Source: Octopus sinensis (taxonomy: Eukaryota). From it: a stretch of 64,000 bases of DNA. The notes beneath the pieces were generated by a model that saw only the letters and a list, made by a program, of their open reading frames with translations, was not told the DNA's origin and ran no database searches. A program made the position numbers and the translations under genes. Numbering within the stretch: the first letter of the stretch is position 1; the number at the start of each line of letters is the position of its first letter. Where the stretch lies: NCBI RefSeq assembly GCF_006345805.1, contig NC_043000.1, positions 90,210,001-90,274,000 on the forward strand. Direction: 5' to 3'. Of the stretch, positions 19,522 through 57,848 are shown one piece after another.

Positions 19522-20119
19522 CTGGAATGATATTATTATTATTGTTATTATTATTATTATTATTATTATTATTATTGAGTGAGAGAGCAGCACATGCCAT
19601 CAAATTGACACTCAGGTGCAAATATAAGAAGCCTAATATACTCAGCATGACCACCCATCTGATAAGAGTACACCAGGCACATGCATCACAACCATATGTG
19701 CATGACATGGTGATCTCATATCTAGATAGTCTGCATATGACCTTGCAGGTGTAGCCCAATGATAATTTTCTTCAAGTACAGTAGCCCATCCCACTCAAAA
19801 GTTCCCTAAATAAAGTTTATTTAAGGATGATAAATGAAACATGTATGTTTCGAGAGGTTTGAATAATTCATTATTCAAACCTTGAAGAATTCCTCTCAAC
19901 ACACAGCTATGATGCTCCCCCATAACTTCTGCTTATCATCATAGATGCACATATCATCAGCCACTAAGGGACATTGTCAACTGGTTAAGGTCAAGCAAAT
20001 CGGTGGTAATGAGCAGAATATTTACTGCAGCCCATCTTTCATACCAAGGCAAAACATGTACATGATAACACTTCCAATCAGTTAAGATCAAAAACTATGA
20101 GAATCACTGCCTGGTACTG

Positions 20120-20612
20120 CATCAAGGCATTCCGGGAGGGCAAGGCAATTTTCTTTTGTCTAGTGGCTGTAGCGAAAGAGTGGTATGGTGGACCCGTTTG
20201 AAAGGGCTAACGTCAGACACTTTCCTCTTTGGCCAAGGCCTCATCAACTTTTTCAAGTTCCACTTGAAAAGGAAGATGAGAGAAGAGAGGGAAGTGCTGT
20301 CTCGTAGCAAATTTATTAAAAGGTGGGTGAATGTCGGAAAAATGGCCAGTATGAACCGACCAATTCTGAGATTACACCTGTAAAAACAAAGATAATATAA
20401 AAGGAGAAGGGGCTCTCCACCCTTTTATGGGTTTTTCCACGAGTAACCTTTTGAAGCACCTCCCCCTATTGGGAGTTTTATTTGTTATATTTTTCATTGT
20501 TATTTGAATGTTTACACGGACCTTTCTTTTTCACAAAACCCTTTGTACTTTTCGTCCTGTGTTTGTCCTTACATGTTTTTTGATGTATGTTAGCCTTTCT
20601 GGCCAATAAACT
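20120..20612 (+). mobile_element. 3' end of an L1/Tx1-like LINE
   Basis: ORF end ...FFKFHLKRKMREERE...FIKRW followed by a UTR and AATAAA near 20605. Confidence 0.6.
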
Positions 20613-21289
20613 AGAATTATTATTATTATTATTATTATTATTATCATTATCATCATTATGGCTGCCATATTGTGAAGTCATGGAAATTTGGTGCTCCATA
20701 AGCTGAAAAAGTATTTGTAATCTTTTTGGCCTTCTAAGGCCCCATATTTTCATTTTTATTGTTACTATTTCATTTTTATTATTGCAGGGGTTGCACATCA
20801 ATAATTTTTGAACGGCAAAAGCAAATATTTTACAATTTTCCGTAATTATTTAAAAATGGCTGATAAATAAACCATCTTAATGTTCAACAAAGGAACATGC
20901 CCCTTGGAAAAAATTGAGAATGAGGATAAAATTGAGAATAAGAACATCACAATAGCCTAAACTTAATGACATCACTGAGGTGAATAATGTTTGTATTGGT
21001 GCTTCTGGTGTGAATGCCAAGCAGTACAGCATGTCATTACCAAATTTCTGACAGAGCGAATTGCATCATGGTGCTGTTTTTTTCAAAAAAGGTACCTTAC
21101 TGGCCCTACTATACTGTGCAGCTGACAAAATCAAAAACAATGTGCATGTGCACATGCACAGAGCAGGGATAGAGAATATGTGTAGACGGTGAGGTGAATA
21201 AACTCTCATCTAAATTATTTAAAAATGAAGATAACACTGACATTTCATTTTAACAGATATTTTCTTTTATTCTTTTATTTTTTTTTTAC

Positions 21290-22790
21290 AAGGGAAAAGG
21301 TGATGCTTTAGATACAAATAATTACAGAGGTATCAAGTTGTTGGATCAGGTAATGAAGGTCACGGAGAGGGTCATGGTCCAACTAATTAGGGAGAGAGTC
21401 AGTTTGGGTTCATGCCAGGGAAAAGCACCACTGATGCTATATTTCTGGTAAGACAGCTGCAGGAGAAATACCTAGCCAAAGATAAACCTCTGTACCTGGC
21501 TTTCATTGACATGGAGAAAGCCTTTGACAGGGTCCCCCAATCCCTTATCTGGTGGTCAATGAAGAAACCAGTGATAGATGAATGGTTAGTGAGAGCTGTG
21601 CAAGCCATGTACAGGGACGCTGTCAGTAAGGTGAAGGTTGGCAATGAGAACAGTGAAGAATTCCGGGTGGAGGTAGGGGTCCACCAAGGTTCAGTCCTCA
21701 GCCCCCTCCTATTGTCCTCCAGACAATAACAGAGAAATTCAAGACAGGATGCCCCTGGGAGCTCCTCTATGCTCTATGATCTTGCTCTAATTGCTGGGTC
21801 ACTATCAGAACTAGACGAGAAGTTTCAAGTGTGGAAACAAGGATTAGAATCGGAGGGCCTTAGAGTCAACCTAGCTGAAACCAAAGTCCTAATAAGTAGG
21901 AAGGCAGGCAAACCACAAATCCCTTCAGGTTGATGGCCCTGCTCAATCTGTAGAAAAGGCATATGTAGAAACTCTATAAGATGTACCCAGTGTAAGCTAT
22001 GGACCCATAAGAGGTGCAGCAATATCAAAGGAAGGCTAACTGGGAAGATAGTTTTTGTATGTGACAGATGCTCAGGAGCAATAAACACTGAAAATGTGCA
22101 GAGAACAACTTCCACCACATTCCAAGGAGAAAAACTAGAAGTAGTTGATAGCTTCCATTACCTAGGTGACTAAGTCAGTAGTGGGGGAGGGTGTGCTGAA
22201 AGTGTAGCTGCTAGATTAAGAATAGCCTGGGCAAAGTTCAGAGAGCTCTTACTTCTGCTGGTGACAAAGGGCCTCTCGCTCAGAGTAAAAGGTAGACTGT
22301 ATGGTGCACGTGTACAAACAGCCATGCTGCATGGCAGTGAAACATGGGCTGTGACTGATGAGGACATGCATAAGCTCACAAGGAATGAAGCCAGTATGCT
22401 CCGATGGATGTGTAATGTCAGTGTGCATACTCGACAGAGTGTTAGTACCTTGAGAGAAAAGTTGGGCCTAAGAAGCATCAGATGTGGTGTGCAAGAGAGA
22501 TGACTGCACTTATATGGCCATGTGGTGAGAATAGATGTGGATAGCTGTGTGAAAAAGTGCCACACCCTAGCGGTTAAGAGAACCTGTGGAAGAGGTAGAC
22601 CCAGGAAGACTTGGAATGAGGTGGTAAAGCATGACCTTCGAACATTTGGCCTTTGGAAATATGCTGTGCTTGTGAAGACTCGGAAAGCCCAAGTGAGACC
22701 CCATCTGCTTCGCCAGACCTCAGTCAAATCGTCCAACCCATACTAGCATGGAAAGCAGACATTAAATGATGATGATGATGATGATGAAAT
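21290..22790 (+). mobile_element. 5'-truncated, decayed RTE-clade LINE (reverse transcriptase)
   Basis: GKSTTDAIFLVRQLQEK, AFIDMEKAFDRVP, GVHQGSVLSPLL, MLHGSETWA and GRGRPRKTW, with stops and frameshifts and a (GAT)n tail. Smaller fragments lie near 8860-9010, 15650-15720 and 38050-38200. Confidence 0.9.
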
Positions 22791-23139
22791 CGACCCCAGC
22801 GGACATTAAATGATGATGATGATGATGATGAAATCGACCCCAGGACTTATTCATGGTAAGCCTAGTACTTATTATATCAGTCTCTTTTGCAGAACCACTA
22901 AATTATAGGGACATAAACACACCAGCATTAGTTGTCAAGCGATGGTGGGAGGACAAATACAGACACACAAATACACACACGATGGACTTCTTTCAGTCTC
23001 TGTCTACCAAATCCACTCACAAGGCTTTGGTCGACCCGAAGCTTTAGCAGAAGGTAGTTGCCATGCAGTGGGACTGAACCTGGAACTATGTGGTTGGGAA
23101 GTAAGCTTCTTATCACACAGCCACTCCTGCACCTATGAT

Positions 23140-23930
23140 ATATTTACCAAAATTACATAAAAATATCTTGAAATACTAAAGAGTAAATTTATTCAATAAA
23201 ATTGCCAATGACTTCAACCACGGTCTCGAGATAACTCGAGATAACTCTTCTGGATGGTCTCCTTGTTTAAGTAGGTGAATGCTACCATAATCCTTACCTT
23301 CAGTTTATCTTTGGAGTTACAAAGAGTTTTGTTGGCCTCTCACTCAACTGTGCCCCACGCATAATAAAGAGAGTTGCAGTCTAGAGAGTTAGGTGGCCAG
23401 ATGTTAGGTGGCCAGATGTTAGGGGTGATGTGGTCACAGAAATTGTCTGACAGCCAAGACTGGGTTTTCCAGCTTGTGTACCATCATGCAAAGTTCTGTT
23501 GCCAGACATAGGGTCTTCTAGCAGACACCCAGGGTAGCACTATCTTCTCCAGGCACTTGATGTAGACCTCTGTGTTGAGTCTGAGGCCATGTGGGAAGAT
23601 GAATGGAGGCATAACATCACCATCACTAGTGATCATTCCAAACACTATGATATTGACTGGATGTTTGAGTTTTATCACTCTTGGTACATGTCTTCAGATT
23701 GACACTCAAACATTCTGAAATGTTTGTATTGGTGCTTCTGGTGTGAATGCCAAGCAGTACAGCATGTCATTTCAAAATTTCTGGCAGAGCAAATTGCATC
23801 ATGGTGCTATTTTTCTCATAGATGGTGCCTTACTGATCCTACTATACTGTGCAGTGGACAAAATCAAAAACAATGTGCATGTGCAAAATTAAAAATATAA
23901 AATGGCAACAATTTACCCATCATACCCTGT
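23140..23930 (-). mobile_element. Tc1-like (IS630-Tc1-mariner) transposon remnant
   Basis: KHPVNIIVFGMITSDGDVMPPFIF...YIKCLE...PYVWQQ, with a terminal CACCCTGTA. Its 5' region is repeated at about 20985-21160. Confidence 0.8.
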
Positions 23931-23971
23931 ATATATACATACATATATATATATATATATATATATATATA

Positions 23972-56618: not shown

Positions 56619-56625
56619 GACAGAA

Positions 56626-56670
56626 TCACAAAATCGAATCGAACGTGAGAAAAAGTTTTTTGTTTTCCAT
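56626..56670 (-). other. uORF2 (MENKKLFLTFDSIL*) upstream of USP34
   Basis: Hand translation with GGTATGG context. It overlaps a possible AAG|GTATGG donor. Confidence 0.4.
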
Positions 56671-56694
56671 ACCTTTTTTTTTTTTTTTAAGCAT

Positions 56695-56709
56695 TCAACA
56701 ATCCGCCAT
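56695..56709 (-). other. uORF1 (MADC*) upstream of USP34, strong Kozak context
   Basis: AATATGGCGGATTGTTGA read on the minus strand. Its presence in the mature mRNA is not established. Confidence 0.45.
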
Positions 56710-56712
56710 ATT
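56703..56712. promoter_or_regulatory. YY1/Pho-type motif CCGCCATATT in the USP34 leader or promoter
   Basis: Matches the YY1 consensus CCGCCATNTT, typical just downstream of housekeeping TSSs, in a relatively CpG-retaining zone. Confidence 0.45.
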
Positions 56713-57848
56713 TGTTTTTAGACGTTTTCTTTCACCGGGAAGAGAATTAAACTTAAACCAGAGTGACCTCCCTTGGCAGAAACAAATTTTCTTCAATTTC
56801 ATTTGTGCAAAATATGCCACAAACAACTTTATACACTAACTTTCTTCTTGACAGCGTTTAAGGAAAAAGACAACGTTTCAACATTAATCCAGTAAATGTT
56901 GAAGAAGTAAACTGAAACTATTACATCAGAACAAAAAATACAAACGGAAATTCGAATGTTTTTGTTTACCTCTGTTTCTCCTACCTCATCCACTCAATTT
57001 AAAGTTTTTTTAATCTCCGACAATAGAGAACGCACCCCCTGTCCTAAATCCATACGCGTTTATTTCCCCTTTATTCTATATTTACCGTATTTTTAATTTC
57101 TTTCGAAGTCTAGTCTTGGGGTCATTGTCGACAACATCGACCAATATAATGTATATTTAAATTATTATATATATTATATATTACTGATGGATCCTCATTT
57201 TATCGATCACGGAGGGAAGAAATGCAAAGACGGCACTGATTGTATTTGAACTAAATTTAACATTCAGTCCGAAGTCCAGTGCACTTATTTGCTACACGAA
57301 ATAATTTAACACCCACCATACCGTTAGGCTTTTTCACTATAAAAATATTATCGACTTCTGAAATTTTGTTACGAAAATAATAATAAAACGCCTTTATACC
57401 TAGATCAACTTTTATTCATTTTTAATGTTAGCTATATATTTTTAATAAAAAATTTTTTTTTCAATTAATCATTAGAAGGTTAGTTCATAAATTGCTTGCT
57501 TTCGGTACTTGATCGGAATTTTAAGAACATCATTGTTCTTTTAAAATTTTAAAACAACAACAATTTGAAGAATTGTTATAAATTAAGAATGTTAGTATGA
57601 GGTAACGTTTTTTTTTTTTTTTTGAAAGAGGGGGAAGTAGGAGTAGATATTGTTAAGGCGGTAAGAGGAACCTTGTTAAACACTTTATAAAACTCAGCAG
57701 AATCATTTCGAATACGTTTTGGGCTTCATTTTTTTTTTAATAAATAAAGCTTTATCATGTTTCAACTTTAACTGCGGATAAAACAAACGATAGAAAGACA
57801 AATAAAGGAAGCCAAAATAAAACTTTAAGAAATATTTTAGTGTCTTAC

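Follow-up and report, generated by a model that had tools for sequence, protein, structure and literature searches.

A likely USP34 retrogene of 3,760 codons inside XYLB intron 1 of Octopus, in the orientation of its host

A 64,000 nt stretch of the Octopus sinensis genome (assembly GCF_006345805.1, contig NC_043000.1, positions 90,210,001 to 90,274,000 of the forward strand), termed here the window, carries one gene inside another. The outer gene is XYLB, a xylulokinase gene, and the inner gene is USP34, which encodes a deubiquitinase. Both are on the minus strand, and the whole of USP34 (56555-45273) lies within the first intron of XYLB (57848-19522). The same-strand nesting was proposed in an original prediction made from the DNA letters alone, and public gene calls agree with it. 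The main finding is that the inner gene is a giant, conserved and functional USP34 retrogene, an unusually large case of a known arrangement. Window positions are used throughout; the window itself is AT-rich (36% G + C) with many simple repeats.

Coding exon 1 of XYLB (57849-57911) extends from the ATG at 57911 to a CAA codon at 57849. It consists of 21 codons (MSSTNICSDRIYLGFDFSTQQ), ends in phase 0 and is followed by the donor gtaaga. Exon 2 (19439-19521) is bordered by ttccag and gtaagt. The intron between the two, 19522-57848, has 38,327 nt, and the ten other XYLB introns in the window range from 119 to 2,622 nt. Intron 8 (6325-6443) is the one of just 119 nt; its neighbours are 1.2-2.6 kb. 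Exons 3-7 are at 17195-17126, 15296-15216, 12593-12507, 9960-9868 and 8688-8587, and exons 8-12 are at 6575-6444, 6324-6265, 4484-4403, 3128-3088 and 1125-1010. These ten exons, which span 1010-17195, were located by tblastn with the human XYLB protein as a lead, with the AG and GT borders placed by eye. The gene continues past the start of the window.

All 12 exons have AG/GT borders and consistent phases, and when joined they give an open N-terminal product of 336 amino acids. This product aligns without gaps to human xylulokinase (4bc2) over residues 10-336 (E = 7e-150) and contains the Pfam domain FGGY_N (E = 5.7e-22). The annotated full product displays both FGGY_N and FGGY_C, the C-terminal exons being beyond the window. 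Public gene calls (GCA_006345805.1, CM016862.1) include a 531-amino-acid FGGY gene that starts exactly at 57911. The splice borders, the 4bc2 match and these calls thus confirm the predicted positions of the two exons that flank USP34. Joining of exon 1 to exon 2 in the XYLB mRNA is predicted by gene models, exon 1 being part of XYLB in two independent annotations: O. sinensis (531 amino acids) and the paper nautilus Argonauta hians (527 amino acids). The G[FW]DFSTQ motif encoded by exon 1 occurs once in all six frames of the whole window, at 57872.

The USP34 open reading frame is uninterrupted on the minus strand from 56576 to 45273, with the ATG at 56555. The coding sequence (45273-56555) is a single exon of 3,760 codons plus stop. 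The start codon is the ancestral one, as it begins the MCDVCS sequence found at the start of USP34 in other animals. It was predicted to lie about 1.3 kb from the XYLB exon 1 donor, and the measured distance is 1,293 nt. The public gene call is for a protein of 3,760 amino acids with a range of 11,283 nt; this range equals the coding length, and the annotated gene is therefore without a coding intron. Pfam domains detected are UCH (E = 1.2e-48), UCH_1 and DUF3517. The catalytic boxes are intact, with the Cys box GLTNLGATCY at residue 2067 and the His box GGHYY at residue 2335. Among 120 protein matches listed, the highest-scoring are without exception full-length matches to USP34 or puf proteins of 3,200-3,850 amino acids. 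In 2,948 gap-free columns, identity to USP34 of other molluscs is 70-72%. Searching the literature for USP34 in combination with octopus gave no result.

The nesting is also present in another cephalopod, A. hians (assembly GCA_054771915.1), whose locus, termed L003, was reached via a cephalopod XYLB protein match. On one strand of L003, XYLB exon 1 (10001-10063) is followed by the USP34 open reading frame (14841-28130) and by exon 2 at ~38873. Intron 1 is ~28.8 kb, and the spacer between exon 1 and USP34 is 4.8 kb. The Argonauta USP34 open reading frame is intact, with 4,429 codons, and is uncalled in the annotation of that assembly. The core of XYLB exon 1 and its donor, CAACAA/GTAAGAC, are identical in the two genera, and the flanking intron is unalignable. 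By blastn, the XYLB introns of Octopus and Argonauta show no alignment apart from repeats and one non-coding block.

The two USP34 proteins are 93% identical over 3,759 aligned residues, a figure that rises to 97% when only the 2,948 columns in common with other phyla are counted; nucleotide identity is 76-84%. The nonsynonymous distance (dN) is 0.015-0.02 in conserved parts, and the synonymous distance (dS) is saturated. The ratio of the two (omega) is ~0.007 in one segment where dS can be estimated. Octopus USP34 shares 65.2, 63.6 and 54.4% identity with its nemertean, annelid and frog counterparts, and USP34 of other molluscs shares 64-65, 62-64 and 54-55% identity with the same outgroups. 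No acceleration of rate and no relaxed phase are visible in this comparison. Because the nesting is common to Octopus and Argonauta, dN is low and dS is saturated, the nested USP34 is read from these alignments as an old, functional gene under housekeeping-grade purifying selection. No date for the Argonauta-Octopus divergence was found in PMC9635652.

The two USP34 genes differ markedly in composition. Nearly all synonymous sites differ (proportion of differences ~0.95), and G + C at third codon positions (GC3) is 0.75 in Argonauta, rising to 0.89 toward the 3′ end, versus 0.35 in Octopus; the host introns have 35-37% G + C. GC3 of the other Argonauta coding sequences at L003 is 0.51-0.56. 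The GC3 gap is therefore taken to represent a genome-wide shift plus an extra gene-specific shift. Argonauta USP34 is also 670 residues longer than the Octopus protein. The N-terminal linker and the C-terminal tail account for nearly all of the extra length, as homopolymer or low-complexity sequence (poly-Q, N, G, S, H and T).

The intronless state of the inner gene was overlooked in the original prediction, which spoke of an insert; retroposition explains that insert and places the arrangement in a known class. In the bivalve Solemya velum, USP34 has at least 60 exons visible by tblastn across 99.9 kb, and the Aplysia gene spans 108 kb. XYLB was not found in the 120 kb examined at the Solemya USP34 locus, and USP34 was not found at the XYLB locus of the limpet Patella caerulea. 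The whole Patella XYLB gene occupies 12.4 kb, and its first intron, which interrupts the coding sequence at the corresponding point (phase 0, after the encoded STQQ), has ~0.5 kb and is empty. Because all introns were lost together and the gene moved to a new locus, octopus USP34 is considered to be a processed retrogene, formed presumably by retroposition of a spliced USP34 mRNA.

Whether the multi-exon parent persists elsewhere in octopod genomes, with the nested USP34 being an extra copy with a specialised role, is a matter on which the comparisons bear. Most functional retrogenes do coexist with their parents (PMC7290577, PMC5803294), and an extra copy is a tentative possibility here. However, constraint on the nested gene is extreme over its full length, all domains and the ancestral start are kept, and there is no acceleration relative to canonical single-copy orthologues. 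Since its evolutionary rate is that of the canonical orthologues, the retrocopy has probably replaced its parent, with loss of the parental gene.

The 5′ ends of the two genes are close together in a domain that is not depleted in CpG. This island-like domain, 55500-58050, starts at XYLB exon 1, has its maximum in the spacer and reaches ~1 kb into USP34. It has 81 CpG and an observed/expected ratio of 1.07 versus 0.35 elsewhere in the window (Poisson P = 2e-17), ratios that depend on the low G + C content and on few CpG per bin. It ranks top among the 2.5-kb stretches of the window, and no other is close. Among animals whose methylation is mosaic, a CpG-undepleted stretch is a mark of a promoter region that is unmethylated in the germline. 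The CpG content thus supports a location of both 5′ ends in one promoter-type domain.

The one non-coding block that aligns uniquely between Octopus and Argonauta by blastn lies in the spacer between the genes. It comprises ~125 nt (56894-57018, minus strand; L003 13667-13796), is 78% identical over 130 nt, and is 340 nt from the USP34 ATG in Octopus and ~1 kb from it in Argonauta. Within it is an invariant GAG/GTAAACAAAAACATTC, a conserved GAG/GTAAAC that displays a GT donor. The block is a candidate for the USP34 core promoter, or for a short non-coding first exon with its donor. It was also considered as a small RNA gene, and this was rejected, as there is no Rfam family and the fold z-score is 0.38; the only Rfam match in the spacer is weak, with 26 bits relative to a threshold of 46.7 bits. 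The original prediction suggested that the insert may have captured the open promoter chromatin of XYLB. The single CpG domain agrees with this in part, but the conserved block between the genes points to a promoter or 5′ exon belonging to USP34 rather than to plain borrowing from XYLB.

Upstream of XYLB exon 1, the only conserved sequence is a short motif, CCTTGACA, 20-50 nt 5′ of the ATG. It is found in two copies at 57930-57975 in Octopus and at 9950-9975 of L003 in Argonauta. From its position, this motif could be a promoter or start-site element.

The account that is considered probable as a whole is as follows. A many-exon USP34 mRNA would have been reverse-transcribed and inserted in sense orientation into XYLB intron 1, just 3′ of exon 1, in an ancestor of incirrate octopods. 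The copy would have kept its complete frame of 3,760 codons and become, or stayed, a working USP34, under very strong purifying selection since then. USP34 would now be driven from its own start site at the block 57018-56894 within the CpG domain, probably with a short non-coding first exon and an intron in the 5′ untranslated region (5′-UTR). XYLB mRNA would be made by polymerase that starts upstream, ignores the USP34 3′-end signals ~0.5-0.6 kb after the stop codon and produces a transcript spliced across 38 kb. The coupling between the genes would be passive, either tandem transcriptional interference or a long-tolerated leaky read-through, a regulated switch being less likely. Of these points, the gene structures, the intronless state, the new locus, the conservation, the selection, the CpG domain and the conserved block are established by the analysis, whereas the retroposition mechanism, the separate start site, the choice of poly(A) site, the passive coupling and the loss of the parent are inferred.

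Several observations weigh against this account. No target-site duplication was found: the USP34 flanks share one 11-mer, with 2.1 expected by chance, and no repeat of 12 nt or more. An A-rich patch (77% A) is present at 44913-44972 on the minus strand, 300-360 nt after the USP34 stop codon, and might be a remnant of the poly(A) tail; seven of the 11 minus-strand A-runs of at least 10 nt are within 3.3 kb after that stop. Argonauta has no such patch after its USP34 stop codon, and the remnant is equivocal. Decay of these end marks would be expected if the insertion is old. A USP34 5′-UTR intron is plausible, with an acceptor that is a guess, the sequence upstream of the ATG being unconserved. 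The start sites, the poly(A) sites and the 57849 to 19521 junction are annotated or inferred, and the CpG ratios carry the dependence stated above. No cephalopod USP34 is among the 120 protein matches listed, and cephalopod XYLB is in the same database; this absence is uninformative with respect to the parental gene.

A different view of the 5′ region is that both genes share one promoter at the XYLB start. The transcript would either end at the USP34 poly(A) site or read through to form XYLB, with a regulated choice between the two, for example by U1 telescripting. USP34 mRNA would then carry XYLB exon 1 as a short upstream open reading frame or as a spliced leader. The 5′ ends are indeed only 1.3 kb apart in a single CpG domain, and intronic retrogenes are known to use 5′ exons of their hosts (PMC2584115). 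In both species, a pyrimidine-rich sequence with an AG directly precedes the USP34 ATG, and in Octopus splicing of XYLB exon 1 to the AG at ~56591 would keep the reading frame into USP34. However, this sequence is unalignable and the corresponding Argonauta junction would be out of frame. The in-frame fusion was rejected as a conserved feature, and the Octopus-Argonauta comparison found no conserved acceptor joining the host 5′ exon to USP34. The spacer in Argonauta is as long as 4.8 kb, and the conserved block within it is what a separate promoter or exon would provide. Unspliced read-in would place the XYLB ATG and a 24-codon upstream open reading frame ahead of USP34. A shared promoter is thus unlikely, and the sequence motifs expected of a switch do not improve its case.

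Those motifs concern protection of the host transcript from premature 3′ ends. U1 snRNP (small nuclear ribonucleoprotein) reportedly suppresses intronic polyadenylation. Long introns with poly(A) signals need such protection, and XYLB intron 1 is similar in that it holds a genuine gene terminator. Motif counts in the USP34 exon were compared with those in synonymous-codon shuffles of the same exon. The U1-type motif GGTRAG is not enriched: three copies are present in Octopus versus 2.5 expected, and none in Argonauta versus 5.5 expected. This depletion in Argonauta is the only signal in the motif shuffles. There are eight poly(A) hexamers versus 11.3 ± 2.7 expected, a depletion that is non-significant. 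With no excess of U1-type motifs, the octopus exon differs from what telescripting would favour, and with no significant depletion of poly(A) hexamers either, telescripting gains nothing from the sequence. The regulated two-gene switch by U1 telescripting put forward in the original prediction is therefore not supported, and a functional link between pentose metabolism and Wnt signalling or DNA repair is conjecture.

The other part of that proposal, that XYLB output needs read-through past USP34, follows from the position and conservation of exon 1. The conserved N-terminal segment of the enzyme is encoded by exon 1, which is upstream of USP34; on this layout, a functional XYLB mRNA with exon 1 must arise only by transcription through USP34. 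The first sense AATAAA hexamers after the USP34 stop codon are at 44804-44799 and 44679-44674 on the minus strand, and these are candidate USP34 poly(A) signals. The site at 44679 is 594 nt after the stop, and in Argonauta an AATAAA is found ~578 nt after the stop. A (TA)n/(TATG)n microsatellite is situated at 43460-44130, 1.1-1.8 kb after the USP34 stop; it has 0.7 kb, 12% G + C and overlapping palindromes.

The nesting would be of little functional effect if XYLB were transcribed mostly from internal starts 3′ of USP34, with exon 1 rarely used. Two gene models are in keeping with internal starts. The O. vulgaris RefSeq XYLB isoform X1 begins with a first coding exon, MIGNTILKRE followed by gtaagt, which maps inside intron 1 at 26547-26518 (minus strand) of the O. 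sinensis window. The O. bimaculoides XYLB model begins only in exon 3, and the N-terminal motif is missing; the O. bimaculoides locus (L004) ends at the equivalent of window position ~25300, with USP34 and the alternative exon outside it. However, the O. sinensis counterpart reads IIGNTILKRE, with ATA in place of ATG, is at the edge of an inverted-repeat element and is not conserved in Argonauta. A product of such a start would be without the GFDFSTQQ segment that aligns to the human enzyme. In contrast, exon 1 and its donor are conserved amid an unalignable intron and are used in the two independent annotations. Because the N-terminal motif is absent from both alternatives, they do not displace exon 1, and predominant internal initiation is quite improbable. 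The original prediction had likewise seen no first coding exon with GFDFSTQQ between 19522 and 45272, and this stands; the exon at 26547-26518 exists without the motif. The oddities of the O. vulgaris and O. bimaculoides models would fit side products of nested-gene interference.

The inverted-repeat element (26376-27021) is 646 nt long, with 166-nt arms that are 98% complementary and 314 nt apart. It looks like a miniature inverted-repeat transposable element (MITE) or a foldback element. One arm provides the GAA/GTAAGT donor of the O. vulgaris alternative exon, and the other arm has a mirror-image acceptor-like sequence.

The possibility that USP34 came to lie within XYLB merely through an assembly error or contamination with complementary DNA (cDNA), for which nothing speaks other than the unusual intronless state, is effectively refuted by the independent assembly of another genus, A. 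hians (GCA_054771915.1), which has the same order and orientation with the 76-84% nucleotide identity and very different GC3 given above.

The preferred account, a sense retrocopy with its own start site and passive coupling to its host, can be compared with several known systems. The original prediction took nested genes to be usually antisense to the host. An antisense majority does exist, but in human nested genes the bias is a mere 63:37, with ~63% antisense and ~41% single-exon, and same-strand cases are documented (PMC3192792, PMC5750009). The octopus USP34-XYLB pair belongs to a known class, the same-strand retrogene in a host first intron. In mouse, rat and vole, for example, the Utp14b retrogene is within Acsl3, in intron 1 (PMC5750009). 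It resembles octopus USP34 in being an intronless copy of a multi-exon gene in a host first intron; several species retain it in working form, and its expression is linked to the host 5′ region (PMC5750009). In primates, UTP14C and exons of its host ALG11 have a splice junction in common (PMC5750009). The Utp14 retrogenes are a few kb long and testis-specific, and their X-linked parent is still present. Unlike these, octopus USP34 has 11.3 kb of coding sequence under housekeeping-level constraint and may be the only USP34.

Retrocopy surveys find that resident promoters are recruited and that 5′ exons and introns are gained later (PMC2584115). Replacement of a parent by its retrogene has been described for amphioxus SYCP1 (PMC5803294), and human orphan retrogenes by Ciomborowska et al. 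(2013), as cited in PMC7290577. In such cases, the role of a multi-exon parent passes to a single-exon copy, which recruits regulatory elements at its landing site. Octopus USP34 differs in being far larger, in the removal of at least 60 introns at once and in its same-strand intronic landing site, parental loss being the probable but indirect part of the likeness. With a tandem inner gene 0-4 kb behind a host exon, host transcripts are prone to intron retention, exonisation and cryptic polyadenylation (PMC3192792). KTI12 in TXNDC12 and intronic L1s are such tandem inner units behind a host exon; interference in octopus is suggested by a similar layout only. Within the class, the octopus pair stands out in several ways: the copy is large, conservation is deep, constraint is at housekeeping level, the parent has probably been lost, and the one first exon of the host that carries the motif lies upstream of USP34.

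A stronger proposal combines these features. Octopod USP34 would be an orphan retrogene that replaced a parent of at least 60 exons and that forms an obligate tandem unit with XYLB in one promoter domain. The output of XYLB would be set by the frequency with which polymerase ignores the USP34 terminator, and the coupling would be older than the Octopus-Argonauta split. In its entirety this proposal is doubtful, but if it is true, USP34 would be among the largest functional retrogenes known, with >11 kb of coding sequence copied whole.

Retroposition normally yields short, truncated copies. The octopod locus indicates that it is able to deliver a whole 11-kb coding sequence that is functional under housekeeping-level constraint. 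If the parent is gone, octopods run an essential gene, normally of 60 to 80 exons, without coding introns, and this would provide a test case for the contributions of introns to splicing-dependent export, nonsense-mediated decay and alternative isoforms. The tandem nested pair is stable across a deep octopod divergence and can be used to ask how a host tolerates a terminator in its first intron. For annotation, the locus matters in that the 4,429-codon USP34 open reading frame is missed in Argonauta, and XYLB is modelled in truncated or altered form in O. bimaculoides and O. vulgaris.

Other features of the window are minor. Seven other open reading frames of at least 150 amino acids, in intron 1 or upstream of XYLB, have no Pfam match, and no tRNA genes were found in the window. 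A CpG-rich spot at 34500-34999 (21 CpGs, observed/expected 1.8) was rejected as a promoter island, as it consists of CG/TG-type simple sequence. In the 8.7 kb upstream of XYLB, only repeats resembling short interspersed elements (SINEs) aligned with Argonauta by tblastx. Copies of a SINE-like repeat of ~100 nt are at 63757-63852, 59689-59780, 30068-30164, 27630-27681, 7755-7853 and 61625-61709. The repeat is common to Argonauta with 83-92% identity (L003 1460-1555, 43640-43735 and 62676-62761). Downstream of USP34, a tRNA-like SINE head with a box-B-type GGTTCGAATCC motif is present at 43300-43460.

In P. caerulea, an activin-receptor-type kinase gene is directly downstream of XYLB (L005 28882-32384). 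The human XYLB gene presumably adjoins ACVR2B, and the adjacency of XYLB and an activin receptor may represent a very old microsynteny. The neighbours of the XYLB locus differ in octopods, with TMEM187 in Argonauta and a TUTase-like gene in O. bimaculoides.

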